A stretch of 64,000 bases of DNA, taken from Azolla caroliniana (lineage: Eukaryota > Plantae > Polypodiophyta). Location: positions 19,158,001 through 19,222,000 of the forward strand of contig JBHGNT010000012.1 in assembly GCA_043228905.1 (NCBI GenBank). The letters run 5' to 3'. Made by a program: the position numbers and the translations under genes. The notes below the pieces were generated by a model. The model was not told the origin of the DNA. It saw nothing but the letters and a program-made list of their open reading frames with translations, and searched no databases. This document shows, in pieces, positions 12,927-37,892 of the stretch; the first letter of the stretch is position 1; each line of letters starts with the position of its first letter.

Positions 12927-13238
12927 TTCAGACGTAGTGTTCAATGAGTTGGCTATGCACAAGATGGTCGAAAGGCCTATTGAAGTCCAAAGGGTAACTT
13001 TTTCCGAACTGCCAACCCTTCATGTAGGCCCAACCGATAACACGAGGTCGACTTCACGGGTAGCCAACATCTCTAGCACCAATTCGGATGTAGTGTTCAA
13101 TGAGTCGGCTATGCACAAGATGGTCAAAAGGCCTATTGAAGTCTGAAGGGTAACTTTTTCCGAAGTGCCAACCCTTCATGAAGGCCCAACCGACAACACG
13201 AGGTCGACTTCACAGGTAGCCGACACCTCTAGCACCAA
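12927..13238 (+). repeat. 156-bp tandem duplication in the copia-2 integrase C-terminal region
   Basis: Units 12927-13082 and 13083-13238, bounded by ttcag/ttcgg microhomology. Confidence 0.92.
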
Positions 13239-13297
13239 TTCGGCTTTGGACCATCTAACTCCGATACTCGACATGACTAGTCTAATCATACCTCGAA

Positions 13298-13775
13298 GAT
13301 CCGAGAGACTGTCACAACCCCCGGAGAGGTACTCTCCTGGAATCTTCTTCACAGACGTTGGCGAACTGATGTCATACGAAGAAGCGTCGGTAATAGCCGA
13401 TTTGGCCACATGGCATCTGGCAATGGAGTCGGAAATGAACTCCATTCAGGCAAACAAGACTTGGGACTTGGTCAAATTATCGAAGAATCGACATGCTCTT
13501 CCATGCAAGTGGGTCTATAGATTAAAAGAGACGTCTGATCCGAGAGACTGTCACAACCCTTGGAGAGGTACTCTCCTGGAATCTTCTTCACAGATGTTGG
13601 CGAACCGACGTCATACGAAGAAGCATCGGTAATAGCCGATTTGGCCACATGGCATCTAGTGATGGAGTCAGAAATGAACTCCATTCAGGCAAACAAGACT
13701 TGGGACTTGGTCGAATTATCGAAGAATTGACATGCTCTTCCATGCAAGTGGGTCTATAGATTAAAAGAGACGTCT
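13298..13775 (+). repeat. 239-bp tandem duplication at the start of copia-2 RT
   Basis: Units 13298-13536 and 13537-13775, both starting gatccgagagactgtcacaaccc. Confidence 0.92.
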
Positions 13776-14490
13776 AATTTGGCCACCTCAAAATTCAAGG
13801 CCAGACTAGAAGCAAAAGGTTTTCGACAAGAATATGGCGTTGACTTCGATGAGATGTTTTCACCAGTGTTGAAAATGATGACCCTTCACTTTATGCTCAA
13901 CATAGTGATAGCCAAGAACTTGGGGCTCATTCAGCTAGATGTAAAAACGACATTCCTCCATGGTGACTTAGAGGAGTAAATTTATATGGAGCAATCGAAA
14001 GGCTTTGTGGCATCTGTTGAGTGGCAAGCTCAACCGGATCCGGATCGACTGAATAAGCCTGAGCCGGATCGGTGAGCCAGTGAGCTGGGGAGGCGGTTAG
14101 CCGGATTCATTAGTAACCGGAAGCCTAGTAGCAGCCTAGACTACTAGGAAATTAATGTCTCGTAGTTAGTGTTAGACACTTGTGTGAGCATTGAAGTACA
14201 CCGTACTTCTGTCAGTCCGTATGGACTTGTATAAAAGTGTTCACTAAACACATACGATGTACAGATTGAGTATAATTTTTTAATTGATTTTCTGTGTGCT
14301 CTCTCTCTCTCTGTCTCTCTCGTGTATTGTGTATATTCTAAGCTCTCCATTAAACCTGTGTTTCTGTGTTCGGTTTTCTATTGCTTCCGCACGCTATTCT
14401 TTTACATGGTATCAAAGAGCGAGGGTTGAGAACCTCTGTAGCCGACATAGCTTGAAAAGAAAACCAACCAAGAAGAACAGGTAAAAACCG

Positions 14491-17400
14491 ATGGATAGAG
14501 GCATGGCTAGCTCGCTTCCGACGAAGAAGCTCGATAGAAACAACTACGCATCTTGGTCCTACAAGATGCACCAGTACCTGCTTAGGCACGGTTACTAGAG
14601 CTATGTCGATGGAGCAAATGACACAGCACCCGAATCGACACACAGAGATTTCCCGGTGTGGGAACAGTTGACAAGCAGAGTATTGTACTGCTTCGCGTCT
14701 TGTGTGGGCAAACAGCTCCTAAGCTACATTCGGGATGCAAAAACGCCAAAAGATGCTTGGGGAAATCTGAAGAAGATTTTCGCCGCAAGCACTACAGCCA
14801 GGAAGCTTCAACTCGAACAGGAGCTAAGCAACCTACGACAACGCGACTTGTCGGTGACAGACTACACCTCCAAAATCAAGGACATTTGCGACTCTCTAGC
14901 CTCCATCGATGTGAATATCGAAGAAGTCGATATGGTGCAAATCTATCTCGGAGGTTTGGCGTCAAAGTTCGGAGCGTTCCGAACTGCTGTGTGTACAAGG
15001 GAGAATATGCCGTCATTTTTCGACTTACAATCGATGCTCCTTGTGGAGGAGAACCACGTCGGTGCGTCAACAAGTGCACCCACAGACAACCGGATGTTGT
15101 ACACGGAGGCGGATCGGCCCCATGGGCGCGGTGGACGAGGCGGGTCGCCTCACAATGGTAGCGGCCGGCAAGAGTAAGACCGAAGGCATAGAGAAAGTGC
15201 CGACAACAGTTCCAGACCCTCCACAAGGAGGGGAGTCAAGGCGGCAGTAGAGGCCGGCAAGCAAAGGCTGACACGAAATGTTGGTACTGTGGTAAAAAGG
15301 GCCACCGAGAAAGTGAGTGTTCGAAGAAGCGCGCTGATTCGGACAGATCTGGATCCGGCAAGGCCGGTAGAGACAACCGGCAATACTCGCACTACGTAAA
15401 AGGATCGGGAGGATCCAAAACCGGAAAAACCAGTAAAGGGCCAGCCTTGGTGATGAAACACGAGGCTAACTCGATGAAGAAGATCACTTCCGAATCGAAG
15501 GAAGTGTGGCACGTTGATTCCAGTGCGTCGAATCACATGACGAGCCACAAAGAGTGGTTCTCTCTCTTGGAGAAACCGGAACAACCAGGAGTTGTCGAAA
15601 CCGGAGACGACACTCCACACCCAATCGTGCATGTCGGAGAAGTCCCTTTGAGCCACGTCGGACAGAGGGGGGAAGTTGATGAACGTATTACACATTTCGA
15701 CCATCACGAAGAACCTGGTGTCAGTTGGACAGATTGTCGACCACGGGATGCAGGTGCGGTTTACGCATCTCAGGTGCTTCATTGAGGAAGAGGGCCAAAT
15801 CATTGTGCAAGGGCGCAAAGACAGGAGGATCTTTATTCTCGACACCAATGACGTCGGCACCGCTTTGTTCGCCAAAGGACAGAAGATTGAATCGGATATC
15901 GATCTCTGGCACAAGCGGATTGGCCATGGCAATTACCGGAGGCTTCAAGACCTACAAACGAAACAAGTTGTTTTCGGTTTGCCGAAGTTCAGTGGCCGGA
16001 AGGCCCAAATATGTGAAGCCTGCCAACTCGGGAAGCAACACCGGCTTCCATTCCCCACCAAACAAAACCGTAGCCGTAACAAGCTCGACCTTATTCATTC
16101 GGATGTATGGGGACCGTCACAGAACGTTAGTCTTGGTGGGAGTCGGTATTTCGTCTCCTTCATCGACAACTATAGTCGGCACACATGGATCTACCTCATT
16201 GAGCGGAAGAGCGAAGTCTTCGAGTGTTTCCGGAACCTGCAAAGTCTGGTTGAACGGGAAATGGAGAGGAAGATCAAGTGCCTACGGTCGGATGGTGGAA
16301 AAGAATATTTTTCCGGCCAATTCAATAGTTATCTGCAGCAAAAAGGAATTCAGAGAGAGTTCAACTGTAGATACACACTGGAGCAAAATGGTGTGGCCAA
16401 AAGGAAGAACCGGTCGATTGTCGACGCGGCAAGGGCAATGCTGGAGGAGAAGAGCATGCTCCATTTCTACTGGGCAGAGGTGGTCCGGACGATCGTCCAT
16501 ATCCAAAACCGGATCAGTGACAAGGTGTCCGCGCATGAGCTATATTTCGGACGCAAGCCGAATTTGAGACACCTTTGGATATTCGGTAGCATTGCATATG
16601 TGCATGTGTCGGATGAGAAGTGGAGGAAGTTGGATGCAAAGTTGGAGAAATGTATCTTGGTCGGTTACTCGCATGAGCAAAAGGGGTATAAGTGTTATAA
16701 CCCCCGGACGAAGCAGGTTCGAGTTAGCCGGGATGTTGAGTTTGATGAGACGGCATCATGGTATGCCTTACCGGCTCCGACTTCCGACCCTAACCCGATA
16801 CCGGAGGATGAGGCTAGTGAGCCTGAACCAGTCCAGATAGGAGATGAAGACCTCGGCACTCTAGAAGAGAGTCCGATCTCATTTCGGTTGAGTGGACAGA
16901 ATGAGCGGCTGAGTCGGGATGACCAGTCGGATGAGGAACCGGCGAGTAATGGAGACTCTGTCGTGCTCTCCCCATGCAAGGAACCGAGGAGACGGTTCAC
17001 GCGCAAAGAGAAGGGAAAGAAGAAGATGTTGGAATACGAAACCGGCAACGTTGAGTCGGATCAGAGCGAAACCGACTCCGGTCAGGAAGAAAGCGGATCT
17101 TCGGGAACAAAGTCAAAACCAGCCAAGAAGGGTCTCAAACCGGGTAACAATAAGATACGTCGGTCTTCCCACTAGAAGAACCCCGTGAAGCGGTACGTGT
17201 ACAATGAGTACATGGCGCATCACTATGCGTACATGACCAAGGTGGCGAAAGTGCGTGAGCCGGAGAGCTACGCAGAAGCGGCAAAGGACGCAAATTGGCG
17301 TGCCGCTATGAAGGAAGAAATGCGGGCACTCGATGCCAACGACACATGGGACCTAGTTGGCCCTCCCCGACACTGTAAACCGATCGGATGTAAGTGGGTG

Positions 17401-19153
17401 TACAAGGTAAAGTACAATGCCGACAGTTCGGTTAACCGGTACAAGGCCCGATTAGTGGCAAAGGGATACGCGCAGACCCACGGAATCGACTACGACGAGA
17501 TCTTTGCTCCGGTAGCGAAGATGACGACGGTTCGTGTGGTGTTGGTAGTTGCTGCGGCAAGGGGGTGGCATCTTCACTAGATAGATGTGAAGAATGCATT
17601 TCTTCAAGGAGATCTTGAAGAAGAGGTCTTTATGACCCAACCCCCCGGTTTCCAATCGGAGATGAACAAGTCGGTGGTATGCCAGCTGAAGAAGTCACTT
17701 TATGGCCTGAAGCAAGCCCCCCGAGCTTGGAATACGAAGATCAAGCACTGGTTGTGTAAGATGGGGTTTGCGGCCTCCAAGTCTGACTCTTCGTTGTTCG
17801 TCCGGCAAGGTCAAGGTGGTCCGGTCTGCATCTTGGTGTATGTTGATGATCTAGTCATCACCGAACCTGGACTCGATGAAGTCGGTCGAGTCAAGTTCCA
17901 GCTGTCGAATGCATTTGAGATGAAGGACCTGGGGGACCTTCACTATTTCCTTGGGATCGAGGTGATCTGAACCCCCGACGGCATAATGCTCTCACAGAGA
18001 CACTATGTGTTGAATATGTTCTACAAATTTGGCATGACGGAATGCCGACCTATCCCTACACCCCTGGATCGGAACTAGAAGCTCCGTCCCGACTCCGAAC
18101 CGGCATGCAATGAGAAACGGTTCCGACAAATCGTCAGAAGCCTTATATATTTGACAATCACCCGACCCGACATCAGTTATCCGGTCGGCATGATTAGCCA
18201 ATATATGCAGAAGCCGACTGTGGAGCACCTTCTATGCGCGCATCGAATTTTGCGATATGTGGGCGGCACGAAGGAACGGGGCCTGTTATACCGGCATGGT
18301 ATAACCAAAGAGCTAGTCGGCTACATCGATGCCGATTGGGCCGGCGATGCATCAGATTGCCGATCCACCTCCGGCCATATGTTTTCCCTTGGTAGCGCGG
18401 TTGTTGCGTGGAGCAGCAAAAAGCAGCCAACAATGGCCCTTTCGAGCACTGAGGCTGAATATCGGGGTGCTACTATTGCCACCTGCCACCTGTGAAGCCA
18501 TTTGGCTTCGGCAACTGTTGCAAGTCCTGCAGATCGAGGTGCCGACCCCGATCTTGCTCTATTGCGACAACATAAGCAGCATGCAACTCACCAAGAACCC
18601 CAAATTCCATGCTCGCACAAAGCACATAGAAGTGCACTACCACTTTGTGCATGACCGTGTCCTGAGCGGTGAAGTCGAACTTCGGTATGTTCATACGGAT
18701 CGGCAAGTTGCCGACATCTTCACCAAACCGCTCGAATCGAACAAGTTGCAACACTTCACCGAAATGCTTGGTGTTCAGCATCTCGACGTGCCACACTTGA
18801 GGGGGAGAACTTGCAAAGACACTGGAACGGGCAAAGGCAAAGAGACTATCGGTTGCGCTGGTAAGGGAAGAACCGACAAGGGGAGAGACAAGAAGAAGAA
18901 AGGAGCCGAGTCGACAAAGGAAGTTGACACATCCGAACAAGTCGGAACCGCCGCCGCCGCCGGCAGAGTCAAGAAGGACAGAGCCACCAAGACCCGGACA
19001 TGGTCTGATGTGGTGAAGGGTCTGGAATCGGAAAACGAATTGGGAGCGACCAATTCAGACAAGAGCTGGAACGAATCGGAGACAGCTGATTCGGTTCAAC
19101 AGACGGATTCGAAAGAACCAGATCAATTCAAGGCCAAGATGATGAGAAGATAG
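14491..19153 (+). pseudogene. copia-3 gag-pol polyprotein (Gag-PR-INT-RT-RH) with several stops and frameshifts
   Basis: MDRGMASSLPTKKLDR…; CWYCGKKGHRESEC; WHVDSSASNHM; LWHKRIGH…CEACQLGK…LRSDGGKEY; CKWVYKVK…YVDDL; DADWAG…SSTEAEY; YCDNISS…HARTKHIEVHYHF…ADIFTKPL. Confidence 0.93.
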
Positions 19154-19239
19154 TGAAGGTCGACGCTAAAACGAAGGAATCGGCGAATCGGCGAGCACTG
19201 AAGTCACAACAGCGAGGGAGTTGAATTGGGCCTGTTGAA

Positions 19240-19344
19240 TAGGGCTCGGCAACGGCTCAGCTTGGCTTGAGCCTCGCCAAACCGGATAAACCGTTTAAGC
19301 CGTTTATAAACTTTAGAGAGAGGGGGAGAGAAACAACAGACAAG

Positions 19345-19375
<31 letters not shown>

Positions 19376-19474
19376 TGAGGGAGGGAGACTAAACAGACGA
19401 TGGGAGAGAGAGTGAGGGAGGGAGGGAGAACTACACAGACGAGGAGAGAGAGAGAGGGTGGGAGACAACATATA

Positions 19475-19508
<34 letters not shown>

Positions 19509-19831
19509 ACACAGAGGGGGGAGAGAGAGAGAGAGGGAGAGAGTCTAGACCACAGACGTGAGAGAGAGTGGGAGGGAGAGCTTGTACAATGTATACTATA
19601 TAGTATATAGTATATAGTGGATCATCTAAGAGAGAGGGGGATGTAGAGAGAGAGAGAGAGAGAGAGGGAGGTTTCTAAACCGGTTTCCAAACTGTTTACC
19701 AAACCGGTTTAGCCTAAACCGGTTTGTGAACCGGCTCGGCTCGGCTTGGCTCAGGTTTGAGATCCCGTAAACGGTTTGGCTTGGATCAGGCCAAACCGGC
19801 TAAGCCTAAACCGAACCATTGCCGATCCCTA
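19240..19831. mobile_element. Non-autonomous hAT-type MITE (592 bp) with a GA-microsatellite core
   Basis: TIRs tagggctcggcaacgg / ccattgccgatcccta. Perfect 8-bp TSD CTGTTGAA (19232-19239, 19832-19839). Clustered AAACCG/CGGTTT subterminal motifs. Confidence 0.92.
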
Positions 19832-19972
19832 CTGTTGAACAGACAAGCCGACCGAGGAGGTCGAGATGCGCAAAAACAGAAGGGTCACGGCAAACGGGAC
19901 CGGACCGGACGAGGAGCGCGAGCGAGGCAAAGTGACGCCAGAAGGAGTCGGGTGGAAGGACCGGCTGCCATG

Positions 19973-22900
19973 TGAAAAGAGATATGATGATAGAAAAGAG
20001 AGAGAAGGAAGATATAGAAACCCAAATCTACAAAGATATATTAATAAGGAGTGATGATCATAGAAACAAGAGAAAGAAGATACATAAACTCAAGCCTACA
20101 AGGATAAATTGATCACTAGAAAAACGCACTACATGAATAGGCAAGAAAAACACCACAAGAAAAAAGCTCCCTCACCACCTCACTCTTCTTGCTTTATATG
20201 AAGTTCTCCTCTAGTAGATAAGTTTCGCTTGCTTTCTTTTCCACGCTTTTTTTACAGCTTTTCCATCTCCTATTCTTAGCTATGATACAACGATCTTCTA
20301 ATCGTCATATCTCCCTCATCCATGTTCCAAATTTAGAGTTTTAAAAAGCTACGGATAGCTCTCGTCATAAGCTTTCTAACCCATATTTGCACATTATATT
20401 TGGCTTCCAAACGAATGAGTTATGAGCATTTGTTTCTGACTGCGTTTTGGTGGTTTGCTTTTTCTCTTTTTACTTTTCTCCATCTTTATTGCTTTTATTT
20501 GGACTTATCCACGAGATGTTGGTTCATGTCCTTGTCCTCCAAATGTGAATCCTCCCTACCTTATATTCTTTTAGTGTCCAATAGCTTGAATTCTAAAAAT
20601 AGTTTCACATTTAGCCCTCCCCCTTGCTTCTTGGTGAACCATTTATGGTGAACCCTAAGCTACTAATAAAACTAAAGGTTCTCCTTCGCCTTATTCATGG
20701 CTATAGACAAAGAAGGAGAAAATAAATAGAAAAGAAACAAACTATGTGAGTAAAACCCCCGCTAGTCGATAGGAAAAACCTCACACTTCTAAACACACAC
20801 ACATACACATTGACAATTGCCATCACCATCTTTCTCCTTGTCAACACAAAGAAAGAGGTTACAACAATTAGTATATCTTCATCAACTTTCCAAACAGAAG
20901 TAGGTCTATGTGATACATAACTCTTGATAGAAGTAAGCATGTTAACATATGAATAAATCTTTCGAGCGAGCGAACCTTTTGTACAAATACCTTCAAAGCT
21001 TCGAGACTTGTCAGAATTGTCATTTTTTGAATTATGTCAATCTTTGCTTCATCAACATGACTTTCTTCTTGGCACACCACATTCTCCACATTACCTTGTT
21101 TTTTATGCATGACCATTTCATCTAGAATCTCATCTCGAAAAGGAAGCAAAAATAAATCTCGTTTGGTTGAATCATTCAAGGATTGGAAGTTGACGTCTTT
21201 CTCCTTTGGAACAACCACAATAAGTGAGACAAACTTCAAATTCTCCAACTTGATGTGGTGTTTGATGCCTTCTACTCTTATCTGTGAATACTCATTTATG
21301 AATAACTTTGTAAACTTAAAAAAGAGAGAAATAAACCTTAGATCCTCTTCTCCTTGGACATCGTTTGAAATCATCTTCTTTTTCCCCTTTAGGGTGATAA
21401 TACTTTTCTCTTCAATGACTTCTTCTTCCTCCTTAGACACCATGTGGAATGATTTGTTTTCCCTATCCCACGAATATTCATCAATTGTTATGCTTTCCTC
21501 TTCTTGCTTGCCAATGTCGATAGATGATTCCTTCTCCTTTATACATTTGATTAGTTGTGGTGGATCCTTTGATGGTGATAAGTTAATGATACTCCAATCA
21601 TGCATTACAAGTAAATCTCTTGGCTCTTGGTCAAATTGTTGTTGAAGAGTTGATGCCCACATAACTTTGTTGCTACTCAATGCAAATCCAAAACATAAAT
21701 CATGCACGAACACCTTCATACACTGCAACTTGGCACTTACCAATGCTTCCTTACACGCATTGATCTCCAAAAGCCAATCTCCAGCTATCACTTCTAGGTT
21801 ACCTTCTTCATCTTGCAACTTCGTTGTGGGTACTTCACCATCAACAACTTCTTTTGTCATATCTTCCATTTCATCTTGCACATATTCATCATCAACCACC
21901 ATATCACTTGTTGTATCAATAATGTCCTCAACATGATGTACATTGGCATCACCATCCATAACATCGCTTCTCATAACTATCTCCTTAGATTCGTCTTTCA
22001 CATCATCATTCTTTATATCATGGTTGTCCTCATGAACTAGATGGGGGGACTCCACATTCATCACCTCTTCTTCATTGTCTCTGGAATCACCTTCATAGAC
22101 ATCATTATAACTCCAAAAATTAGAATAATGATATGAGGGAACCTGTTGAATCGGACATTGCAAGTAGGCTGGTTGTTGGCTCATGACCGATCCACAATTA
22201 TTATAGCTTGGATTTATGGTATATGACGCCGATAATCCATATGCTTCACCGAATAACAACTTCTTCAATTGTTGATCATAACTTTGACATACTCGAAGCA
22301 AATCATGGAAAGACCTTGGGTACTTCATATGCACTTCATATTGAAAATATGGATCTAGCCCTGCTTTGAATCTTTCCATCTTGAAGTATACATCTTCAAC
22401 GCCTCCAACAAGTCCAATCCAAGTGGACCATATATCCAAAAACGTCTTCTCATACTCGAGGTAGCACATTGGTGAAACCATACGCAATTGGAAAAGTTCT
22501 CTTCGTAGATCTGTCGCATCGCGAACTCCATATCGTGCCATTAGTTTGATGATGAATCGGTAGATCCAACCATCAATTAGTGGACAACCGTTCCTCCCGT
22601 TATACGGAAAGGATCGACCCTCCCTGGAGCGCCAAAAATGAAAAGAGATATGATGATAGAAAAGAGAGAGAAGGAAGATATAGAAACCCAAATCTACAAA
22701 GATATATTAATAAGGAGTGATGATCATAGAAACAAGAGAAAGAAGATACATAAACTCAAGCCTACAAGGATGAATTGATCACTAGAAAAACGCACTACAT
22801 GAATAGGCAAGAAAAACACCACAAGAAAAAAGCTCCCTCACTACCTCACTCTTCTTGCTTTATATGAAGTTCTCCTCTAGTAGATAAGTTTCGCTTGCTT

Positions 22901-23275
22901 TCTTTTCCACGCTTTTTTTACAGCTTTTCCATCTCCTATTCTTAGCTATGATACAACGATCTTCTAATCGTCATATCTCCCTCATCCATGTTCCAAATTT
23001 AGAGTTTTAAAAAGCTACGGATAGCTCTCGTCATAAGCTTTCTAACCCATATTTGCACATTATATTTGGCTTCCAAACGAATGAGTTATGAGCATTTGTT
23101 TCTGACTGCGTTTTGGTGGTTTGCTTTTTCTCTTTTTACTTTTCTCCATCTTTATTGCTTTTATTTGGACTTATCAACGAGATGTTGGTCCATGTCCTTG
23201 TCCTCCAAATGTGAATCCTCCCTACCTTATATTCTTTTAGTGTCCAATAGCTTGAATTCTAAAAATAGTTTCACA
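19973..23275 (-). mobile_element. Young 3.3-kb non-autonomous LTR retrotransposon (TR-GAG-like, Ty3/gypsy-derived)
   Basis: Two 637-bp LTRs (19973-20609, 22639-23275; TG…CA; about 4 mismatches by eye). Perfect 5-bp TSD CCATG (19968-19972 / 23276-23280). PBS TGGCGCTCCAGGGAGGGT (minus, 22617-22634). PPT GCAAGGGGGAGGGC (minus, about 20614-20627). One internal ORF. Confidence 0.96.
20868..22541 (-). CDS. 557-aa Gag-like protein fused to non-catalytic RT remnants (first ATG after the PBS; the open frame extends to 22691)
   Basis: N-terminus fits the retrotransposon Gag capsid pattern (ELFQLRM…YLEYEKTF…KMERFKAGLDPYFQYEV…PRSFHDLL). Acidic linker. The C-terminal 150 aa align by eye with RT segments of the gypsy pol at 31082-34507. 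No stops. Confidence 0.85.
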   Translation of the reverse strand: MARYGVRDATDLRRELFQLRMVSPMCYLEYEKTFLDIWSTWIGLVGGVEDVYFKMERFKAGLDPYFQYEVHMKYPRSFHDLLRVCQSYDQQLKKLLFGEAYGLSASYTINPSYNNCGSVMSQQPAYLQCPIQQVPSYHYSNFWSYNDVYEGDSRDNEEEVMNVESPHLVHEDNHDIKNDDVKDESKEIVMRSDVMDGDANVHHVEDIIDTTSDMVVDDEYVQDEMEDMTKEVVDGEVPTTKLQDEEGNLEVIAGDWLLEINACKEALVSAKLQCMKVFVHDLCFGFALSSNKVMWASTLQQQFDQEPRDLLVMHDWSIINLSPSKDPPQLIKCIKEKESSIDIGKQEEESITIDEYSWDRENKSFHMVSKEEEEVIEEKSIITLKGKKKMISNDVQGEEDLRFISLFFKFTKLFINEYSQIRVEGIKHHIKLENLKFVSLIVVVPKEKDVNFQSLNDSTKRDLFLLPFRDEILDEMVMHKKQGNVENVVCQEESHVDEAKIDIIQKMTILTSLEALKVFVQKVRSLERFIHMLTCLLLSRVMYHIDLLLFGKLMKIY

Positions 23276-25293
23276 CCATGGAGACTGACACTACGATCCG
23301 ACCTCAAGTTGAGCTTGAGGGGGAGTGTTGAGTGGCAAGCTCAACCGGATCTGGATCGGCTGAATAAGCCTAAGCCGGATCGGCATCCGAAAGGATGAGC
23401 TAGATCGGTGAGCCGATGAGCAAGTGAGTCAGTGAGTTGGGGAGCCGGTGAGCCAGATCCATTAGTAACTGGAAGCCTAGTAGCAGCCTAGACTACTAGG
23501 AAGTTAATGTCTCATAGTTAGTGTCAAACGCTTGTGTGAGCATTAAAGTACACCGTACTTCTATCAATCTGTATGGACTTGTATAAAAGTGTTCACTGAA
23601 CACACACGATGTACAGATTGAGTATAATTTTTGAATTGATTTTCTATGTGCTCTCTCTCTCTGTCTCTCCCGTGTACTGTGTATATTCTAAGCTCTCCAT
23701 TAAACCTGCGTTTCTGTGTTCAGTTTTCTATTGCTTCCGCATGCTATTCTTTTACAGCATCCGGCCAGGAACATCTAGTATGCTGAGTAAGGAAGAGTCT
23801 ACATGGTCTGAAAGAGGCACCGAGACAGTGGTATAAGAAGTTCGACGACTTCATCCAATCAGTCGGGTTCTCAAAGATGGACCACTAACTCTTCACCAAA
23901 ACGGCTCAAGATGGGTCACCCATCTTCCTCATCATATATGTGGATGACATGCTACTCTCCGGCCGGCATGCCGGTGAGCTCGCTGAACTTGTTCGGCAAT
24001 TGCAGTTGAAATTTGCCATGAAGGACCTCGGTTCGGCAAGACACATTCTCGACATGAAGATAAGTCGAAATCGAAATCGACGACAATTGTTTCTGTCTCA
24101 ATCTGACTATGTTAGCCATGTCCTAGAATGCTTCAACATGCACTCGGCCAAGTCTCAACGAGACTGCCCAACATCCGGTCCGGAGGGGGAAGATATGAAG
24201 TTGGTACCATATGCATCGGCAGTAGGCTCCTTGATGTACGCGATGGTCGCGACACAACCTGACATTTCTCACGTCGTCGGAGTCGTCAGCAGATTTATGC
24301 ACAATCTTGGCCAACCGTATTGGAACACAATTAAACATGTGTTCAGATACCTTGTGGCACAAAAGACTATGGCATCCTATTCGGCCCAAATGATACTTCA
24401 GGCGTAGTCAGCTATACCAACTCAAACTTTGCAGGCTGCATGGACAATCGAAAATCGACAACCGGATATTGTTTCAAATTTGCCAATGGAGCAATATCAT
24501 GGAAATCGAAACTTCAGGAGTGTATTACCACATCAACGACCGAGGCTGAATATGTAGCTAGTTGATTGGCGCACACGTTTCGACAAGTTGACTCCGACTC
24601 AACTCTAGTTTTCTATAATGACAGTAGTCATGGTGTTGTTGCTCTATCGAAAAATCCGGTTCATCACAACTACTCCAAGCATATCAACGTTCGATATCAC
24701 TTCGTTCGAGAATACGTCATTTTAGGGAAAATCGGCCTTGAGAAGATGCCTACAACCGATAATGTCGCTGATGAGTCGGACAATCGACATCGACAGTTCA
24801 AAGCTTGGCTTTAGTTCTTCCAACCACAACCGACTCAGCCTTCTGTTCTTGAATTGTGCCGATTTGAACAAAACCAATATGTTTGATAACTTTGTATAAT
24901 CTGTAACTCTTATTTATTCTTTTTACAGATTTTTGGTTTCTACGCCCATTACATGGGAGTGTGGAATATGGGTCTCTAATGGCCATATTCACACTATCCC
25001 TATGGACAATCTAGGTTTAGGACATGTTTGTAAATATGTCAAAGGCAATTTCCCTAGCCTAGTTAGTATATAACGGGCTTGGTAATCTAGTTCAAAAGTT
25101 GTTGTTATTGTTAGAGAGTTGTTGGCTCCATTGTATTGTAACCATCTCTCAATAAGAACTATTACATTGTGTGCCTCTTGATCTCTCCCTCTCTCTCATT
25201 CTACTCTTAGATCTTGCTTTCACTTGTACACTCGGTGATCATCATCAAATGGTGTTGTTGATGTTTCCGCACTGACTGCCTCAATTCCCAACA

Positions 25294-26875: not shown

Positions 26876-28774
26876 ACGTATTAATCTAATGATGGTCATG
26901 ATCATGATCATGATCATTTTTAATATTGAGCTGTTTCGAGGACTGATACGATCGAGTTGTTTCAAGGATTGATAAAATTGAGTTGTTTTGAAACATATCA
27001 AGCTAATGATGATCACAATGCAAACCTAAAGATTGGATATAACAATATCATATCTTATAGCAAGCCAAGGCCTAGGTAAAGGGGTCCATATATCAAAAAC
27101 ATGAAAGTGGATGCTCCTAGAGACACAACACAAAGGACTAAGTGATTCCAAATATCATTATTGACAACAAGTTTAGTGTAAATGTGATTAATAACGCCAC
27201 TTGCTAGGGTCGTGACACTACCAATTGGGACAAATGCATGTTCTAGCTAGGCATGAGGAACACCAGCTCAGTACGACCCCTTGGCCATGTTAAGGACCTC
27301 CTCGTCTCTGCAAGGGGCATTCGTTTCACATTTCAATTGTAGTTCTCTGGTTGCTTGAAGTTGGATCATACCCATTCCTCTTGGGTCAAGCATAATTGAC
27401 TATGGCGTACATGACCTGGTGTTGAGGCAAGACGAAGGTCAAGCAACCGACAACTCCCTGACCAACTCGGCATTACCACTTGACACCCCTTCACATCTAG
27501 AGCATTAGAATTCTCTAAGAGATAGCTAATATGAACCTTGAGGCATAGACGGATTATCATGTAACGATCATCCCTCTTTTCGAGAGCCCTACCAACACAC
27601 ACACCCCACTAATTGAGTTTTCAAAAGACCCACCACCAAAAAGGACACTTACGATACTCGATCAAATTGTTCATTGTTTTTGCATGTGCGCATAATTCCT
27701 TGGAGTGGGTGTTGTTGATCTCCCAACATGTGTCACATACCAATTTGGGAGAACTAGTCAACATCAACATGGAGGTTGACCCTCAACTAGTAAAAATCAA
27801 AATGCATCATGTCATTTCATCGAGAGCTATGGTTGACCTCATTTGTGAGTATCGAGATGCCTTTGCTCAGTCCTATGGGAACTTGGGGTGCTTGGATCCT
27901 AGATTCTACCAACATCAAATACATTTGAAGTAGGACACCACCCCCATCTAGCAACAATGGTATTGAATGAACCCCAACTATGTCACTCTCATCAAAGAAG
28001 AAATCAACAAACTTTATGGGTGGGTTTCATATGGCAGTCAAGAATTCCATGTGGGTGTAGTTGTTGTTTCATGAAGAATGGTAAAATCCAAGTTTGTGCC
28101 GACTATCACAAACTTGGCACAAATAATTACCTAAATACATCAACAAGCCACAAAATGTATAGTTTTCTTGTTGGTTTCAATGACAATGTTTAGATCTAGA
28201 TGAGAGCCAAGGACAAAGAGAAAATGGTCTACATTGTCGAATTGGGCATGCACATAGACATTCTCATGATGTTTGGCCCCAAGATAATCCTTGCTATATT
28301 TTGATGCATCACTGTCCAAATCTTTGAAACAAATGTTGGCCGGTCAGAAGAGCAAGGACAAGTGGGAAGGCGGAATCGGATCGGATAATAGGAAGTAAAT
28401 AATAGTATATTTATTATTCGGAGGGACGGATCCGGTACAGTTGTACCGATCCGGATCCGGACCGATTCGGATGCCGGTTGCCTAAGCGCACCGATTGTAA
28501 CCTTGCCGGATGCCTATAAAAGGATCCGATGATTTGTAAATGCTTGACGGAAGTAATACAATTATACTTATTGCGTGTTTATCTTTGTCTTTGTATTGTT
28601 TTACCGTCTGTGCTTAGTGTAATCATCTTACGCGTGTAACCTAGCATCCAATCCTTACCACCCCTTTGGAGAAGTGTCGGATAGACACTTGTGTTGAGGC
28701 TAGTCCGGCCAGGCATACAACACTATTTTGGCGACCACGATTCCTGCAAAGTGCAGAGGACAACCGGGGGATGG

Positions 28775-31700
28775 ATGTCTAGACCAAACGACGACCACAT
28801 CACCGAACGAGGGAGACGATACACCAAACGAGAGCAACGACGGGAAGCCCTGCAGCAAGCCGTCGACGAGATCCGGCGAGATCGGTCATTCTCCAGAACT
28901 CTTCGGAGAGTCGCAGAAGAAGCACTGCAATTCCGGGTTCTGCAAGTCCCCGACGAAGGCAGTACCATAACAGGCCTGCAAGAGGTGGAAACGATACTAC
29001 AGACGCTCGCCGGTGGCGACGGAGACTCGGAAGCACTCGCAACACTCGAGGCGGAGTCGGAAAGCGACGGAAGTGTTGCGTCCCGGTATAAAAGCAACCA
29101 CGACACACCAAACGACCTGAGGGAAGAGGAGTCGGAAGACTCAGTAACACCGGAGCCAGAGGAAGAAATAACCTTGGAGTTCGGTGACCGGCAATCGCCG
29201 AGGGAGGCTGACCGGATACTGACAACACCCGCGAAGGAACCGAAGGACCGGACACCGGCAACACCCGCGGAGGAACTGAAGGAGCGGATACCGACACCAA
29301 CCGCGGAGGAACCGAAGGTTCTCACACCGACGCCAACAGCGGACAGAGAGCGGAGAGAGCAGGAGAGTCAGTTGGACGACACGATGTCGTACCCATACCC
29401 AAAGTACTGGGATGAGCCCGACGCGGAGGCACACATGTACGCATTCCTCCAAACATGGGAAGCCAACCATGTTTCCCAAAGACTGACGGAGCCCGAAGCC
29501 GAACGATCCAAAGTCGCCGAATTCGGCATGACCTTAGAAGGACTGGCGGCCCGATGGCACGCAAAGCACTTACCGGGCAGCTTTGCCACATTCGATGCCT
29601 TGAAGGCCAAACTCCTCAGGCTTTTTCACAGACAAGTTGAGCAAAGGGAATTGGTCAGGCAGTTCTACACCACCCGGCAGGAAGAGAATGAGACTGTGCC
29701 ACATTTCATCATTCGGTTTCAGACCCTGCACAGCCAACTGACGAGAGCACCACCCGAAGACGAAGCCAAAGCAGTCTTTTTGGCCGCGCTAAAAGAGCCA
29801 CTTCGAACGATGTGCGGAGTCCTTGATTTCCGCACCAGCACAATGGACCAAATTATTGATCGGGTCTTAGAAATGGACAAGACTAGCTCCTTCTTGTTGA
29901 TGGGGATGTTACACCGGGCACTCCCGAAGGAGGAAGACCTGAGGTTCCGACAGGCCTTACAATGCACAACATGCCTAAATTCGGGCCACTCAACGGTAGA
30001 CTGCAACCTGCAGACACAATGTATGATCTGCAACTCTCGAGCCCATACAACGGACCGATGCGAATATAACCTGTTAAATCGGCAGGCGGCACCGGTTCGA
30101 CACATAGAACCGCGCAATCAGGACCCGGATGAGGATCGATTCCGGAGAGACGACCGCTACCAACGCGAACGTGGTAACAGATACGCTGATAAAAGACGCA
30201 ATAACTATGACCGAGAGGAGAAATGCAGAGATAGCTACCCCCGGGACCGGTACGACCGAGACGAATCCCCGGAATACGAACGACGCGGAGAAGAGAGGCG
30301 ACAAGGGAACCGGAATTTCCGACGGAATCAGAAGCGTGGATTTTTCCGAAGAGAGGAACGTCAGGAGGCAGCAAGGAATGACAACCCGGTATCGGTACCG
30401 GATAACCGAAAAACCGAAGATGACCGCCGAAGTATACCCACCCCCCAAACCGGGGACAAAGGAGAAACGAGCAACAGTCACAAGGTGTACTGTTATTACT
30501 GTCGTAAGGAGGGCCATTATAGTAACCAATGCCCAAGCAAAACCAATGACAAGCAACCGGCAGTCAACATGGTTACAGCCGAAATAACGAAAGTGCAGCA
30601 GGTCACAACCCGGTCAAAGGGGAAGGCCGCCGAGTGGGAAGCCTAGGAGGCAATCAGAAAACAAGCGGCGCAATGGATCAAGAAGGCCAATGAACAGAAT
30701 GCGGCAGAAGTAAGAGACCAAAATATGCCAAAAGACGAAGAAATCATACAACCAGGAGAAAACCCGACGTGGCAAGCGCTCCAGGACTATCAAATCGTGT
30801 TGCCGTTAGCACGGCTACTACAGTTGGTGCCACGGTTTACGGCAGACTTACAGGCATCCGTGAGCAAACCGAAGCCGACGCCAGCACCGGCATTCTTCTC
30901 CAACCCGGAGGAAGGACCAGCTGTGGTCGATACAAGTAGCCCAACGATCACGGCAATCGTGAAAGGAAAGGAAATTGCCGGAACAATTATTGACGGAGGC
31001 TCCGGGGTAAATGTCATTAGCTGACAGACATGCGACAACCTGGGCATCCGGGAATGGGAACCATGCCCCTTCTGGTTACGCATGGCGGATACCAGCTCAG
31101 TCCGACCGACCGGGCTTATCCGGGATTTGGAAGTAACGATCAGAGGCCACGTATTCCGGATATCTGTCGTGGTGCTGCAGCTGAATGTACAAGGCGCGTA
31201 CCCCCTACTGCTAGGACGACCATGGCTGCGAACGGCGCATATCAAGCAGAATTGGCAAAAGAACATGATCACATTCCGGCGAGGGAAAACAAATGTACGA
31301 GTAGCGACGCAACCACAGGTGATCGCCAGTAAGGAAGCAACTCCATTGTATGCGGAAAGCATCAACATGTTGGAGGGATTACCGGACGAGGAAGTCGATC
31401 GGTACCTCGAGGAACACCCACGAATCGTCCCACTATCTGAGGTGGATATCACGGCGGCAGTAGAACCATACATCACGACGCCGGACGAACCGGACCAAGC
31501 GGCGATCCGGGAACTGCGACAAGCGCAGGAATCCCTAGAGAGGGAGATGACGATATCCCAGAGGGTAAAAGCATCCCAACTAGAGGAGGTGGACCTCGGC
31601 ACAACAGACAAGCCCCGACCGGTAAATGTCGCAAAGGAATTGCCGAAGGAAGAAAAGAAGGCAATGGTAGCATTATTAACAGACTTCAAGGATGTGTTCG

Positions 31701-34507
31701 CGTGGTCATACGAAGACATGCGAGGGCTGGACCCCCAGCTCTATCAGCACCAAATTCACCTAAGTATGGACGCGAAAACGATCGCTCAACGCGGGTACCG
31801 GATGAATCCGAATTATGCAGCGAAGGTGAAGGAGGAGATTGATAAGCTCCTCCAGGTCGGATTTATCCGACCGGTCAAGCAAGCAACCTGGCTGAGTCCG
31901 ATAGTGGTGGTCCCAAAAAAGAACGGCAAAATCCGGGTATGTGTGGACTACCGGAAACTAAATGCCGCAACGGTGACCGATGCGTTTCCACTACCATTTA
32001 CGGACGGGGTGTTAGATGTGGTGGCCGGCCACGAAGTTTACAGCTTCCTAGATGGATTTAGCGGTTACAACCAAATACGAATGAACCTGGCCGACCAGGA
32101 GAAGACAACGTTCGTTACGGAATGGGGAGTGTTCGTCGCGGTCGTGATGATGTTCGGACTAAAGACCGCCCCAGCGACCTTTCAAAGGATAATAATGGAA
32201 ATTTTCGGGGAATATATCCCTGGTTTTATGCAGGTCTTCCTTGACGATTTCGCGGTCTACAGCCGGCACGGAGAGCATCTCGATCACCTCCGGCTATGCT
32301 TAGAGAAGTGCCGCGAGTACCGGTTGAGTCTGAACCCGGCCAAGTGCGTCTTTGGAGTGGCAAGCGGCAACTTGCTAGGGCACGTGGTGAGTAAGGAAGG
32401 AATCGCGGTAGATCCGGATAAAGTAAAGGCGATTCTCGAGGCACCGGCACCAAATAACGCAAAGGCTTTAAGCCGGTTCCTGGGCCAAATAAGGTGGCAT
32501 AGCCGGATGATACGGCACCTCGCAGACTTCACTACACCATTGCATGCCGCCGTACACAGGGTACCCTTCCTATGGGCGGAGATGGAGGAGAAAGCCTACC
32601 AAGCGCTAAAGGTTATGTTGTCGCAAGCTCCGGTGGTGCAACCGCCGGATTGGAGTAAAAGCTTTCACGTCTTCGTCGACGCGTCGGACGTAGCAATCGG
32701 CAGCGTTCTGATGCAACTCACGGAGCCGAAATGGTACCGGCCGGTGTACTACGCAAGCCGGAAACTCTCAAAAGCCGAACGGAACTACTCTACGACGGAA
32801 CACGAGGCATTAGGAATGGTGTATAGTGTCACAAAGTACAGGCACTATCTGCTCGGAAGGAAGTTTTCCTTCCATGTCGACCATTCGGCACTACTCTACC
32901 TGGTCTCGAAGGCATCCCTGACAGGAAAAATTGCACGATGGACACTGCTGTTACAGGAATTTGAATTCGACATTTTCCACCGACCCGGGGCGCAGCATGC
33001 GGTAGCGGACCACCTAAGTAGACTCGAATCCGGAGAAGCAGGGGACGGCGTACAGGATGAGTTCCCCGACGCCGAGTTGTTCCGGATCACGACGGAACCG
33101 GCAACAGATGCAACGGTAGCCGATGAAGACAAGTGGCTAATCGAGATGCATCAGTTCCTGAGCACCGGAGTACCCCCGGAGAACATGGACCGCGATGAAA
33201 GGAAAAGGGTAGCAGTAAGAAGCAGACATTTCTGCTTGGTTGGAGACACCCTCTATCACAAGGGGGCAGATGGCATCTGGAGACGAGCAGTGCAGAGCAA
33301 TGAGAAGGATCTAATCCTCAGGGAAGCCCATTGTGGAATTGCCGGCGTGCACTATGCCGGCGACGCAACCGCTCGGAAAATATGGCAGAGCGGACTGTGG
33401 TGGCCCACCACCCTAAAAGATGCCGTGAAGTATAGCAGAGAATGTGATTTGTGTCAACGACTGGGCCAGCCCACGGAGCAGGCCCGGATGCCACACCACC
33501 CAGTCTTGCCATTGGAACCATTTCAAAAGTGGGGTTTGGACTTTGTCGGTCCCTTCAAGCCACCGGCAATGCAAACCGGAAATCGGTATGTCATAGTGGC
33601 GACCGACTATTGCACCAAATGGGTGGAAGCGAAGGCCTTACGGGACAACACGGCCGCGTCCACGGCAAAGTTCCTGTACGAGTGCATATGGTGCCGGTAT
33701 GGATGCCCGATCGAGCTTATAAGTGACCAAGGAGGACACTTTCTCGGGCAGGTAGTAGAAAGCCTGACGTCATTTTACGCGGTGGTACATAAAAGGAGTA
33801 CTCCCTACTACCCTCAAGCCAATGGACTAGCGGAATCGACGAACAAAACTCTGCAGAACATCCTACGAAAAATCGTCAACGAGAACCGGACCGACTGGGA
33901 TACGAAATTGCAGAGCGCGCTATGGGCGTACCGAACAACGTACAAAACCAGCATCCGGACAACCCCGTTCCGACTAGCATTCGGCTTAGAAGCGGTCATG
34001 CCAGTAGAGTTCCAGATCCCCAGCTTACGAATCCAGGTAAAGGAGCGCTTAAGTGAGAAGGAGTCCGAACGAATCCGGCTGGCGACGTTGTTGGAATTAG
34101 AAGAAAACCGAATAGCCAGCTTAGTACAACTCGAACTGGAGCAAAGGAGGAGAAAAGCTTTCGTGGACCGACACCGGCATGGCAACGAAAAGGAGTTCGA
34201 AGTCGGAAAACCGGTGCTACTGTTCCAGACACGGATGGGGAACATGCCGGGAAAGTTGCGGTTTCGGTGGACCGGACCGTTCTGGATCACCAAGGAGCTC
34301 AGCACGTTGTCTGGAGAAGTCATCGGTAAGTGGTCAAATGGGTTTCGGCTAAAGCCGTATAAGGGACATATGCCAGCCAACCCGTTCAAGCAAGACCCGA
34401 AAATCCGGCACGATGAGGAACCAACACCGACAGACGCTGCTGCAGAAATCCGGACCAAGGAAGAACCGACACCGATACCGACAAAGACTATCCCGGAAAA
34501 CCGATAG
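28775..34507 (+). pseudogene. gypsy-C single-frame gag-pol broken by two in-frame stops (TAG 30644-30646, TGA 31022-31024)
   Basis: ORFs 28691-30646, 30725-31024 and 31082-34507 share one frame. Gag (LEGLAARWH…FYTTRQEENETVPHFIIRF); three CCHC knuckles; PR IIDGGSGVNVI; RT FLDGFSGY…MMFGLK…FLDDF; RH VFVDASD; INT H-H-C-C, WGLDFVGP, ISDQG, GLAES, RWTGPF. Confidence 0.93.
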
Positions 34508-35022
34508 AAGGAGATTCCGGTATCAGCGCGAACCGACCCGAACAAATCGGGCGGGACCGGAAAATGACGTGGTCCAAAAAAACAAAAACAAAAAAAAAAA
34601 ATCAAAGTAATGATGATGGGGAGATCACAAGAGGTGGGAGCGCCACCATTCAATGAAGAGGCGCCATGAAGTGAAGGAGGACGTGCGCGTACTTGCTATT
34701 TAAAGCATAGAACGTGGGCACCGACGTACGAGGTATTATGCACGCGCGGCAATCAAGAGAAGAATTGCTAATGATGACAGGAGATATGCACACGCGGCAA
34801 CCAAGAAAGGACATACTAATTATGGCGGGAGATAGACATGCGCGGGAACCGAAAAAGGGCGGCTCGAGGCAAAAGCCACTATATAAGACATAGGCCTGCG
34901 AAGGACTTACTTTTTACGAATTTTCCTACACACAGGCGCAGAAGCACAGAAGAGCAATCCGACGCACAGAGCACGCACATCCCAATCCCGAACAACAGAC
35001 AGCAGAAGAAGAATCTGAACCA

Positions 35023-37892
35023 ATGGCACTGTCAGAAGAGGCACGCCAATGGATGATAGAGAACGGGTTAGAAGGATTGATGCGGATCGCCGACACTCCA
35101 CCACACGCAGAACCGGAGCAGGCGGCAACATCGATTGATTTATCAGAAGTCACGGAAGGAGCGGTGCAGGCGCTCACGGGGATAAAAGTAGGAGGACTTC
35201 AAACGATCGAAAACCCTTCAAGTCAAATCCTGTTCGAATATTTCGGTGAGTATTCCATTAGCAGCAAGGCATACCGAACAAAGGGTGGAGAGAACCTGTT
35301 GTTCGGAGAAGTGACCCGCGCCATGATGGAGTACGGATTCGTGAATTCTCGTCCCCCGACCATAGCCAGGTACCAGGCAGCGTTCGTAATTGCAACGTAC
35401 GAAGGATTACAAGTGGACTGGCTCCATTTCATAACCGAAGGATTGAAGGAGGCCATCAAGAACCTTGTGGAAGGAAAAAAGCCATGGGCCGGGATAGCAC
35501 AATGGCTAACGGTGTTAGTCCCACCGGTGCTCCCCATCAAACAAAAGAAAAGAGGTCGGCAGGAGACGACGCCGAAAAAGGTCACAAAGCGCCGACAGAT
35601 CCTGGAGAAACACACCCCCGGATGGACCCAGGAAGAATCAGAACAGCGAGAGGAAGGACCATCCCAACAGCAACAAGAACCGGCAACAAAGGCAAAACCG
35701 GCGAGGAAGACCAACAAGGAACCGGCCGAGGAAGAACCGATAGCGCTCAAACCAATCAATATAACGCTGCGACGGCCGGAACCGGAACCAGAGGACTTTA
35801 TACAAAAGGTCCGTCTGATAGCCGCACCGGAGGAGGAAGCTGAGACGGAAGAAGACTCATCCGAACCACTGGTAAGACTCCCAGCAAGACAAGGTCGGGA
35901 GAGACGGGCGAGAGGACCGGCTCCACCAGTTGACAGAACTCAGCAGAGGGCGCAAGGACCACCTCTAGTAGCCGGGGCGGAAGCAGTACCGGAACCCGCA
36001 TCGAGGGAAGCAGTACCGGAACCGGTTTTGCCGGACTTCAGAGAACCGGTCATTCCGGAGAAGAGGAATGAACAAGTGCCGGAGCCAGAGAAAAGGTCGG
36101 AAAAACAGCCTGAGTTAAGAAGTAGAAGTGAGCAATGCTACTCCGACACAGGAAGCACAAAGCCACAATGGCTGAGATGGCTTTCGGAGCAGGTGTCGGG
36201 AGTAGCGGACCAGTTAGAGGAAGAAGAAATGCGTAGGCAACACCTGACGCATACAACAACCCAGGAGTTGGTCGCGCTCCGAACACAGATCTAGGAGTTG
36301 CAAGGGGAGCTGTTGCAGGCGGGGGAAAGAATTCAACAAGCACAAGTTGTCACCGAGTCGGTCGGGACAACAAGGAAGCAACCAGAACCGGAACCGGAGA
36401 CGAGTTAAAAGCTCAGGAGGCATTAAGGGAAAAAGAAAGGGAGCAGCGGAAAGCGGTGGAGGACGACAGACGAAGAATGGAAGAAGGCCTCCGGAAAGGC
36501 CAAGCCACTAATGACCGACTGCAAGAAGAAAAAGAAAAGCTGCAAAAGGAGAAGGACCAACTGCGTCGACAGGCCGAGCAGGAGATAGAGCGACTGTAGG
36601 AAGAACTCCGACAACAGAAGGACCGGGACGATCGGTTAAGAGCTCAGGTGAGCCGACGCTTGAAGCAGAAGACGGAGGACTTCGACTGACTCTACCGAGA
36701 TCACAAGCAGGCCGAGTCGGACAACAAGAAACGGGCAGTAGACTACGATCGGCAAATAGAGAAGCTGAAAGAACAGCTCAAAGAGACCCGATTGGACCTG
36801 GCTAAGACAATGGACGAGGTCAGTGCCAAAAAGGAAGCATTGTCGGCGGAAATAACCCAAGCGACGGAGAGAAGGAAGGAATTAGAGGTGCTAAGGCGGG
36901 AAAAGCTGGATCTGACCAAGATCCGGAATGAAGAAAAGGAAAGATCGACCTTCACGCTCAACAAACTACAAAGTGCCTATGAAAAGCAGAGAGCGGATTA
37001 CGAAGCCCAGGCTCAGATAATGGCCGACATTATAAAACGGGCAAGGAAGGAAAAGCAAGAAGCTTATGCGCATGCTAAAGCGGGGGTTGACCAGATCAAG
37101 CTCATCATGTCATGTTGGAGTACCCGAGCTCAGGCAAGCATCAACGAAAGTACGGAAAAGCTATGGAAGGAGTGGTCACAACAAGCAGCCGAGCTGCAGA
37201 CACTCTGAGCTGATGCCGAGAATCGGAGGAAGACCGGTGACAAGTTCTACAAGATGGATGAAGAAAGTATCATCGCCATTCGGGAAGAATTGTCGGAGGA
37301 TTTCTACGCTTTAGCGGAAGAACATCTCAAAGAAATCTGAGGGTTGGTAGAGAGGTTGGATGACGGGCAGCTCGCAACTCAGTTGGAGTTGGAGAAATAC
37401 GAGTAGGACCGGTTACGACAGGAAGCCGAGGGAAGAACGATGCCAATCACTATAAGTGAGGGAGAGCGACCGGTTGAAGCTGAACCAACCGACATCGAAC
37501 AACCCCGACAAGGAATACCCGAAGAAGAACTTCCGGTCCAAGAAAATCAAGAAGAGCAGGTGCAGACCAATGCCGGGGAAGAAGAAGAGCTGAGACCGGA
37601 AAACACCGGAGTAGAGGAAGAAGGCGCACTGAACCGACCAGTCGAGACCGGAGAAAGCGACACTGGTAACAAAACAGAGCCTGGAACGGAGGAAGAACAG
37701 GAAGAACCCGGACGGAGCGGTGAGGAAGCACCGGCACCACAGAATCAAGCAGAGCCAGAGCAGCAAATTTTTACGGAACAGCCAACCCAACCGGAGGTCG
37801 GAGACCAGGCAGGCAAGGAACAGGAATTGGAGGAAGAGGCACCACTTGACACCTTCGAGCGGAGTTTGCTCGATATTTTGGAGGAAGACTGA
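35023..37892 (+). pseudogene. Extra sense-strand ORF of gypsy-C (about 950 codons originally): globular N-terminal domain, long coiled coil, acidic tail
   Basis: ORF pieces 35023-36294, 36792-37208 and 37440-37892; the last two are in one frame joined through TGA/TAG codons. E/K/Q/R-rich heptad-like sequence. TATATAA at 34880-34886. Confidence 0.75.

Follow-up and report, generated by a model that had tools for sequence, protein, structure and literature searches.

The window analysed here, a 64,000-nucleotide stretch of Azolla caroliniana DNA (GenBank assembly GCA_043228905.1, contig JBHGNT010000012.1, positions 19,158,001 to 19,222,000), contains at positions 19,973 to 23,275 a compact long terminal repeat (LTR) retrotransposon whose coding strand is the minus strand and whose single open reading frame (ORF) runs through remnants of a gypsy-type Gag, protease, and reverse transcriptase (RT). 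The parts by which an LTR retrotransposon is structurally defined, namely direct LTRs, a target-site duplication (TSD), a primer-binding site (PBS), and a polypurine tract (PPT), are all present. Their positions in the window, together with that of the ORF, are as follows.

22639..23275, minus strand: 5′ LTR, 637 bp, from the LTR-LTR alignment
22634 to 22618 (listed span 22611..22634), minus strand: PBS, starting TGGCGC, 4 bases past the 5′ LTR
20868..22541, minus strand (read from 22541 to 20868): one ORF, from ATG to stop, with 557 codons and the stop codon, its frame unbroken in each of the nine full-length copies
20632 to 20615, minus strand: PPT, an 18-nt purine run ending 5 nt ahead of the 3′ LTR
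19973..20609, minus strand: 3′ LTR, 637 bp, from the LTR-LTR alignment
19968..19972 and 23276..23280, no strand assigned: TSD CCATG, 5 bp, from the flanking sequence

The LTRs have TG..CA ends and differ at 4 sites, by three transitions and one transversion (99.4% identity, Kimura two-parameter distance 0.0063). An insertion age of about 0.2-0.5 million years is estimated from this divergence under substitution rates of 0.7-1.3e-8 per site per year, which are assumed from plants and may not be those of this genome. The PBS occurs only once in the window and is identical across all family copies and the autonomous relative described below; no tRNA genes were found in the window. No second sequence resembling the element was found within the window. 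The initial annotation of this region had reported 637-bp LTRs with about 4 differences, a perfect TSD, a PBS, a PPT, and a 557-aa ORF, and all of these agree with our re-measurements.

The ORF product gave no Pfam match, even at E<=10 and with the Gag models and RVT_1 included. The motifs D[ST]G, CCHC, and YxDD are absent from it, in line with the earlier statement that the protease active site and the CCHC knuckle are missing. When the ORF was compared by BLASTP with the gypsy element present in the same window (28334-38242), residues 437-480 were the only region matching its pol, at 41% identity to the RT (E 1e-6), and there was no match to its Gag; the capsid homology of the ORF is visible only with a closer partner. 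Such a partner is found on L001, a metagenome contig that carries a copy of the family, followed by an LTR 95% identical to that of the window element, the same PBS, and a long polyprotein gene. The polyprotein comprises Gag, a zinc knuckle, an aspartyl protease, RVT_1, RNase H, and a second RNase H (RVT_3), and an integrase is indicated by precomputed Pfam hits for the full 1730-aa gene. Judged by these domains, it is of Tat-like gypsy architecture, and the window element, which has only relics of these domains, is a derivative of that lineage. The ORF is colinear with the L001 polyprotein, in the gypsy domain order, over three BLASTP segments: residues 7-98 align with polyprotein residues 79-170 (58% identity, E 3e-31), residues 258-480 with 499-785 (E 2e-21), and residues 477-557 with 891-970 (E 4e-9). 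The ORF is composed of the following parts, in the order of translation.

22248..22541, minus strand: residues 1-98, capsid (CA) C-terminal domain of Gag, from BLASTP to the autonomous Gag, AlphaFold, and Foldseek
21771..22247, minus strand: residues 99-257, acidic stretch with 25% D+E, a net charge of -32, and a predicted local distance difference test (pLDDT) score of about 20-26
21357..21770, minus strand: residues 258-395, relic of the protease C-terminal half and the protease-RT linker, aligned to partner residues 499 to ~660
21102..21356, minus strand: residues 396-480, pre-RT segment and RT fingers relic, without a 34-39-aa block and a 5-aa block
21084..21113, minus strand: in-frame palm-deletion junction, common to all type I and type II relatives (see below)
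20871..21101, minus strand: residues 481-557, RT thumb-start relic, aligned to partner residues 891-970 (E 4e-9) and better conserved than any other block of the tail

The part that had been called Gag is therefore homologous to capsid, as the 58% identity indicates, but it consists of the CA C-terminal domain only, the CA N-terminal domain and the zinc knuckle having been lost. For the acidic stretch, no homologue was detected outside the family. The description of the ORF as Gag plus RT overlooked the relic of the C-terminal half of the protease at residues 258-330, for which the ESM Atlas provided a lead to aspartyl protease clusters (scores 0.76-0.84) and from which the active site is lost. 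With regard to the tail, its origin from RT is borne out by residues 437-480 and, against the closer relative, by more of the sequence; what survives, however, amounts to about 47 aa from the fingers plus the first 60 aa or so of the thumb and not to a fingers-plus-thumb domain. The in-frame absence of the palm was correctly recognised: partner residues 786-890 (about 105 aa), which carry the DGYSGY, PFGL, and FIDD motifs, have no counterpart, and the RT-derived part contains no xDD motif. The second missing block, previously put at ~40 aa, corresponds to 34-39 aa absent from the fingers. The last 23 aa of the ORF are hydrophobic and could not be aligned to the partner RT. In a sequence search of the PDB with the family profile, the Ty3 RT (4OL8) appeared only at E 0.17, on the fingers motif. 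The RVT_1 palm with its catalytic Asp motifs, which a functional RT requires, is lacking from the ORF.

Since protease, RT, RNase H, and integrase are all non-working, copying and insertion of the element need the proteins of a partner, and the description of a young, trans-dependent LTR element stands. The PBS and about 25 of the next bases are common to all copies and to the autonomous sequences. At the other end, on a second metagenome contig (L002), the autonomous 3′ end and the 3′ untranslated region of the window element agree at 94% identity over the last 183 nt ahead of the LTR, so that the PBS, the region just ahead of the PPT, and the LTR are shared by element and partner. An autonomous partner with similar LTR and PBS, as called for by the initial annotation, has thus been found on a metagenome contig but not in this genome. 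The gypsy element in the window was considered as the helper and rejected because it is without the PBS. On three metagenome contigs, the interiors of different elements alternate with LTRs: L001 (1-6909) has the arrangement given above; L002 (1-6916) reads autonomous pol 3′ end, LTR, non-autonomous interior, LTR, and a gag with a frame break; and L008 (1-3539) reads the 3′ end of one non-autonomous subfamily, LTR, and a second subfamily. These alternating interiors would represent either true LTR-sharing tandems or paths of a short-read assembly through repeats. Autonomous and non-autonomous interiors adjoin the same LTR family in those metagenome samples.

Protein and DNA searches yielded nine full-length copies of the same architecture, with a protein identity of 79-99%: the window copy and those on L001-L004, L007, L008, L009, and L011. 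They were found as catalogued proteins (P0001-P0005) or on contigs L008, L009, and L011. Partial copies occur on L012 and L013, and further members are present in protein clusters. The full-length and partial copies belong to a form designated type II, in which the CA N-terminal domain, the knuckle, the first half of the protease, and the 34-39-aa block of the fingers are missing. A less deleted form, type I (L005, L006, L015), has a complete Gag with zinc knuckle, a protease in which the catalytic Asp is replaced by Asn, and the 34-39-aa fingers block, while its palm junction and C-terminal end are exactly as in type II. In one type II subfamily (L001-L004, L009), 13 further fingers residues are deleted. 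The order of events as reconstructed from these forms is a complete element, the palm-less, protease-dead, truncated type I, type II, and finally the subfamily without 13 more residues. Because the same junction is found in all relatives, including the older and less deleted form, the palm deletion is a single old ancestral event inherited by all, neither recurrent nor designed. The expectation that copies would share the deletion junction and an intact ORF was confirmed, the junction being present in all relatives and the frame being open in the nine full-length copies.

Several other observations concern the relatives of this family. Two further relatives from this gypsy lineage, P0036 and P0052, have lost other parts of the RT palm; deletion derivatives are apparently common in the lineage, and internally deleted RTs seem to arise in it repeatedly. 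On L011 (2874-3302) and L013 (1-150), about 130 nt of the protease-relic region is exchanged for unrelated, in-frame, stop-free sequence. A compensated frameshift was considered for this segment and rejected, as the DNA alignment shows a non-homologous in-frame replacement. The intermediate form is present on L015 (139-2700) and L005 (1-1929), and the Gag of L015 is nearly identical to the autonomous Gag of L001 over about 330 residues, which suggests either recent recombination between autonomous and defective elements or a chimeric contig. One and the same interior, its leader and capsid part 94-99% identical among copies, occurs with two or more LTR types between which blastn gives no alignment (L002 2075-2786, L008 877-1612, and L011 1248-1955 were compared with window 19973-20609), and the LTRs on either side of the L002 interior are only 74% identical to each other. 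These patterns point to LTR swapping or modular evolution in the family.

The state of the reading frame was assessed by counting stops and gaps. About 4.6% of random substitutions in the ORF would make a stop, and over the nine copies 9.1 stops were expected from the missense count, while 0 were seen. Because ORF-based catalogues had supplied six of the nine copies, the test was repeated on the three copies retrieved by DNA pattern and tblastn, which differ by at least 132 changes and contain 0 stops where 6.1 are expected (P about 0.002). Gaps among the nine copies fall at five distinct positions, in each case with a length that is a multiple of three (5/5), and all type II copies and fragments retrieved at the DNA level are open (L008, L009, L011, L012, L013). 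By these counts, the frame is clearly kept open beyond chance. An explanation by plain decay, according to which the ORF has no role and is open through chance in-frame deletions, youth, and preferential cataloguing of intact copies, draws on the near-neutral amino-acid change and the predicted unfolded tail (both described below), on the ORF-based origin of six of the nine copies, and on relics that are divergent and of low coverage (L014-L017, L019), most of them type I-like, which are broken by stops and frameshifts. It is nevertheless unlikely in view of the stop-free DNA-retrieved copies, the in-frame gaps, the stop-free replaced segment of L011 and L013, and the open state of every type II sequence obtained at the DNA level.

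Constraint at the level of amino acids appears weak. Pairwise Nei-Gojobori ratios of non-synonymous to synonymous change (omega) between the two main clades are 0.44-0.56, and those of the RT relic between these clades are 0.45-0.60, below 1 in every pair. The maximum-likelihood omega of the whole ORF is 0.63 (kappa 2.3), compared with 0.72-1.63 for the same alignment read in the five wrong frames as a control. For the C-terminal part, analysed in twelve sequences with type I included, it is 0.74, and the test against omega = 1 is borderline (twice the log-likelihood difference, 4.9). A conservative column-wise count gave 60 synonymous and 141 non-synonymous changes, i.e., a synonymous fraction of 0.30 against a neutral value of 0.25 (p 0.057). 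By the same measure, the fingers relic (0.32 vs. 0.25, p 0.16) is indistinguishable from neutral, and the thumb-start helix (0.46 vs. 0.25, p 0.02 uncorrected) is the only block that stands out, with variable third codon positions and invariant columns. Most residues thus seem to drift almost neutrally. The frame-preserving selection proposed by the initial annotation is supported as far as the open frame is concerned, but not for the RT-derived part as a protein, in view of its omega, its fingers relic, and its further deletions.

Structure prediction separates the ORF into two unequal parts. In an AlphaFold2 run with a 19-row alignment, residues 5-98 fold confidently into five helices (pLDDT 83-94), and everything past residue 98 has a pLDDT of <35. 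Foldseek matched the folded part to CA C-terminal domains with template modelling (TM) scores of 0.7-0.82 normalised to the target, including the Arc C-lobe, PEG10, Drosophila Arc, the Ty1 CA C-terminal domain, and the Ty1 p22 structure. The RT-derived tail, folded alone with intact RTs in the alignment, reached a mean pLDDT of 37, and the anticipated fingers-plus-thumb fold was not obtained either alone or in context; this is weak negative evidence because both alignments were shallow. The predicted complex of ORF residues 1-100 with helper Gag 1-175 scored 0.02, which counts neither for nor against binding.

The reading we prefer, with a probability of roughly 60%, is that the element is a young copy of a multi-copy, trans-mobilised Ty3/gypsy deletion derivative in which an open frame, and not a pseudo-RT, is maintained. 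The family would have arisen by stepwise internal deletions from a Tat-like autonomous element, and partner proteins would copy and insert the element in trans. The RT pieces are what one ancestral palm deletion left behind and not a purpose-built pseudo-enzyme; they change almost neutrally, have been shortened further in some subfamilies, and are not predicted to fold. What is maintained would be the open frame from the capsid C-terminal domain through the conserved C-terminal helix. We favour a protein with two useful ends, of which the N-terminal capsid C-terminal domain could join the Gag lattice of the helper and the conserved C-terminal helix would be the second, tied together by a tolerant, acidic, and largely disordered spacer; any stop codon in the spacer would deprive the protein of this second end. 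About as likely is that translation over the full length may shield the genomic RNA, e.g., from nonsense-mediated decay. No literature linking the open frames of non-autonomous LTR elements to nonsense-mediated decay was found. These two possibilities are favoured because a need for the capsid domain only would leave the stop-free tail of 460 codons unexplained.

Several points weigh against this reading. The sample is biased towards open frames by the ORF-based catalogues, from which six of the nine full-length copies were obtained, and short-read contigs of repeats may be collapsed consensus sequences. The p value of 0.02 for the C-terminal helix fails correction for the six blocks tested. 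Divergence is uneven along the element: the leader and capsid part differs by about 2% and the RT relic by 20-25%. LTRs of different types have also been exchanged among copies; the family is therefore recombinant, a single tree is approximate, and tree-based omega values are weakened. The partner is known from metagenome contigs and not from this genome, and the LTR-sharing order on these contigs, which are possibly chimeric, may be an assembly artefact caused by repeats. Finally, stops in the tail should be tolerated if the capsid domain alone mattered, so that any reason given for the open frame is tentative.

A more specific proposal is that the two-ended protein is itself selected as a hitchhiker: the capsid domain would dock in the helper Gag lattice, the thumb-derived helix would contact the helper polymerase or a membrane, with the disordered acidic spacer in between, and the protein would either tilt packaging and reverse transcription in favour of the RNA of the element or hold back the helper as Ty1 p22 does. 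If true, it would account for the frame, but not the sequence of the spacer, being kept; we consider it improbable.

The capsid part also invites comparison with the Ty1 restriction factor itself. In Ty1, which is a complete element of the copia type, p22 is made from an internal transcript and inhibits particle assembly by binding Gag, its inhibitory function having been shown (PMC4599808, PMC8458377). As in p22/p18, the protein encoded here starts inside Gag, from a new ATG, and its sole confidently folded part is the capsid C-terminal domain, a truncated Gag recognised by BLASTP, AlphaFold, and Foldseek alike, with the Ty1 CA C-terminal domain and the p22 structure among the matches. In contrast to Ty1, the DNA itself specifies the truncation here, in a non-autonomous element of the gypsy type; a 460-aa tail follows, and the protein is known from sequence and predicted fold. 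A regulator of this kind, which would poison or tune the assembly of helper particles as a copy-number control or as a competitor, is quite improbable: inhibition of the helper would cut the spread of the element too, the predicted complex with helper Gag gave no verdict, and the capsid part shows low divergence at synonymous and non-synonymous sites alike within the family, so that protein-level selection is not demonstrated. Least credible is a Gag-pseudoRT fusion selected as such, in which the palm-less remnant, as an adaptor or decoy, would bind the helper Pol, recruit it, or interfere with it. In its favour, the junction and the frame are kept in all relatives, conservation within the tail is highest in the thumb-start block, and the RT-relic omega lies below 1. 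Against it, common descent alone predicts a shared junction, the fingers relic is without significant constraint and has lost 34-39 residues in all type II copies and 13 more in one subfamily, neutrality of the C-terminal part is rejected only at the borderline, and AlphaFold shows no folded tail domain alone or in context.

Gag-encoding non-autonomous elements have been described as TR-GAG in Coffea and Arabidopsis and as RLG_Quinta and RLG_Sabrina in wheat (PMC11302176, PMC13570524). The present element resembles them in being an LTR element without RT or integrase, with one ORF of Gag homology, with a PBS and LTR ends common with a putative autonomous partner, and with recombination between lineages; in some of these elements, the Gag homology is joined to a domain of unknown function (DUF1 in Quinta). 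It differs from the TR-GAG group in that only the CA C-terminal domain is present, without a Pfam Gag match, and in that the ORF continues through protease and RT relics under weak amino-acid constraint. Under the strict definition of TR-GAG, it agrees in lacking pol but not in having a complete GAG and nothing else. A partner pair is defined by the same PBS, LTR termini, and PPT region within the same genome (PMC11302176). The autonomous sequences that agree with the element in the PBS and about 25 nt after it, in the LTR (95%), and in the 183 nt ahead of the PPT (94%) lie on L001 and L002, possibly chimeric metagenome contigs from outside this genome, and would be candidate partners.

In a survey of sugar beet, 15 families were reported in which one or more POL domains, RT for example, survive in a partly decayed state, and 8 of these families have GAG/PROT remnants too; tandem arrangements, reshuffled LTRs and interiors, and LTR-sharing tandems were described as well (PMC13570524). 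An apparent reshuffling of LTRs and interiors is likewise seen on L001, L002, and L008. With regard to the suggestion that the architecture had not been described before, elements of a broadly similar make-up, with gag/protease remnants and a partly decayed RT, are known from this survey (PMC13570524). Domains are patchy within the sugar beet families, and no conserved continuous frame through the relics was reported (PMC13570524), whereas none of the type II copies sampled here has a broken frame. Non-autonomous Athila families of Arabidopsis are without pol and have complete Gag and Env-like ORFs that are reported to be under purifying selection (PMC2410132). They have in common with the present family the broad Athila/Tat gypsy branch, pol-less families with intact ORFs, recombination among distant lineages, and the question of whether the encoded proteins aid propagation; they differ in that Gag is truncated here and it is the open frame that stands out, with amino acids changing near-neutrally. 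The element falls in the known class of partly decayed non-autonomous families, and what sets it apart from the described cases is one continuous frame through the relics with near-neutral change.

As for the setting in the window, the element is probably nested in an older copia element (14072-23686), because it lies between 263-bp repeats at 14072-14334 and 23424-23686 that are 89% identical and flank copia-type pol ORFs. Copia integrase ORFs occur at 15676-17175 inside this putative host, and a related copia copy lies at 59938-63295. In the gypsy element at 28334-38242, a 423-aa ORF without a Pfam match is located downstream of pol (35023-36294). Short tandem duplications are present at 12927-13775 and 56603-57120 (with unit lengths of 156, 239, and 259 bp, each unit present twice at 92-97% identity), and an assembly gap of 100 N spans 47898-47997.

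As a story about RT, the finding is ordinary, the pseudo-RT being a relic. Non-autonomous LTR elements are usually viewed as RNA-level parasites whose coding remnants are noise, yet this family holds a frame of 557 codons open over lineages 10-20% apart while most of its amino acids drift. The stepwise series from a complete element through a palm-less, protease-dead form to a compact one could be used for studying how such parasites originate. If a genome census agrees, the family would provide a testable case for translation, or a truncated capsid, mattering in packaging or copying by a helper.

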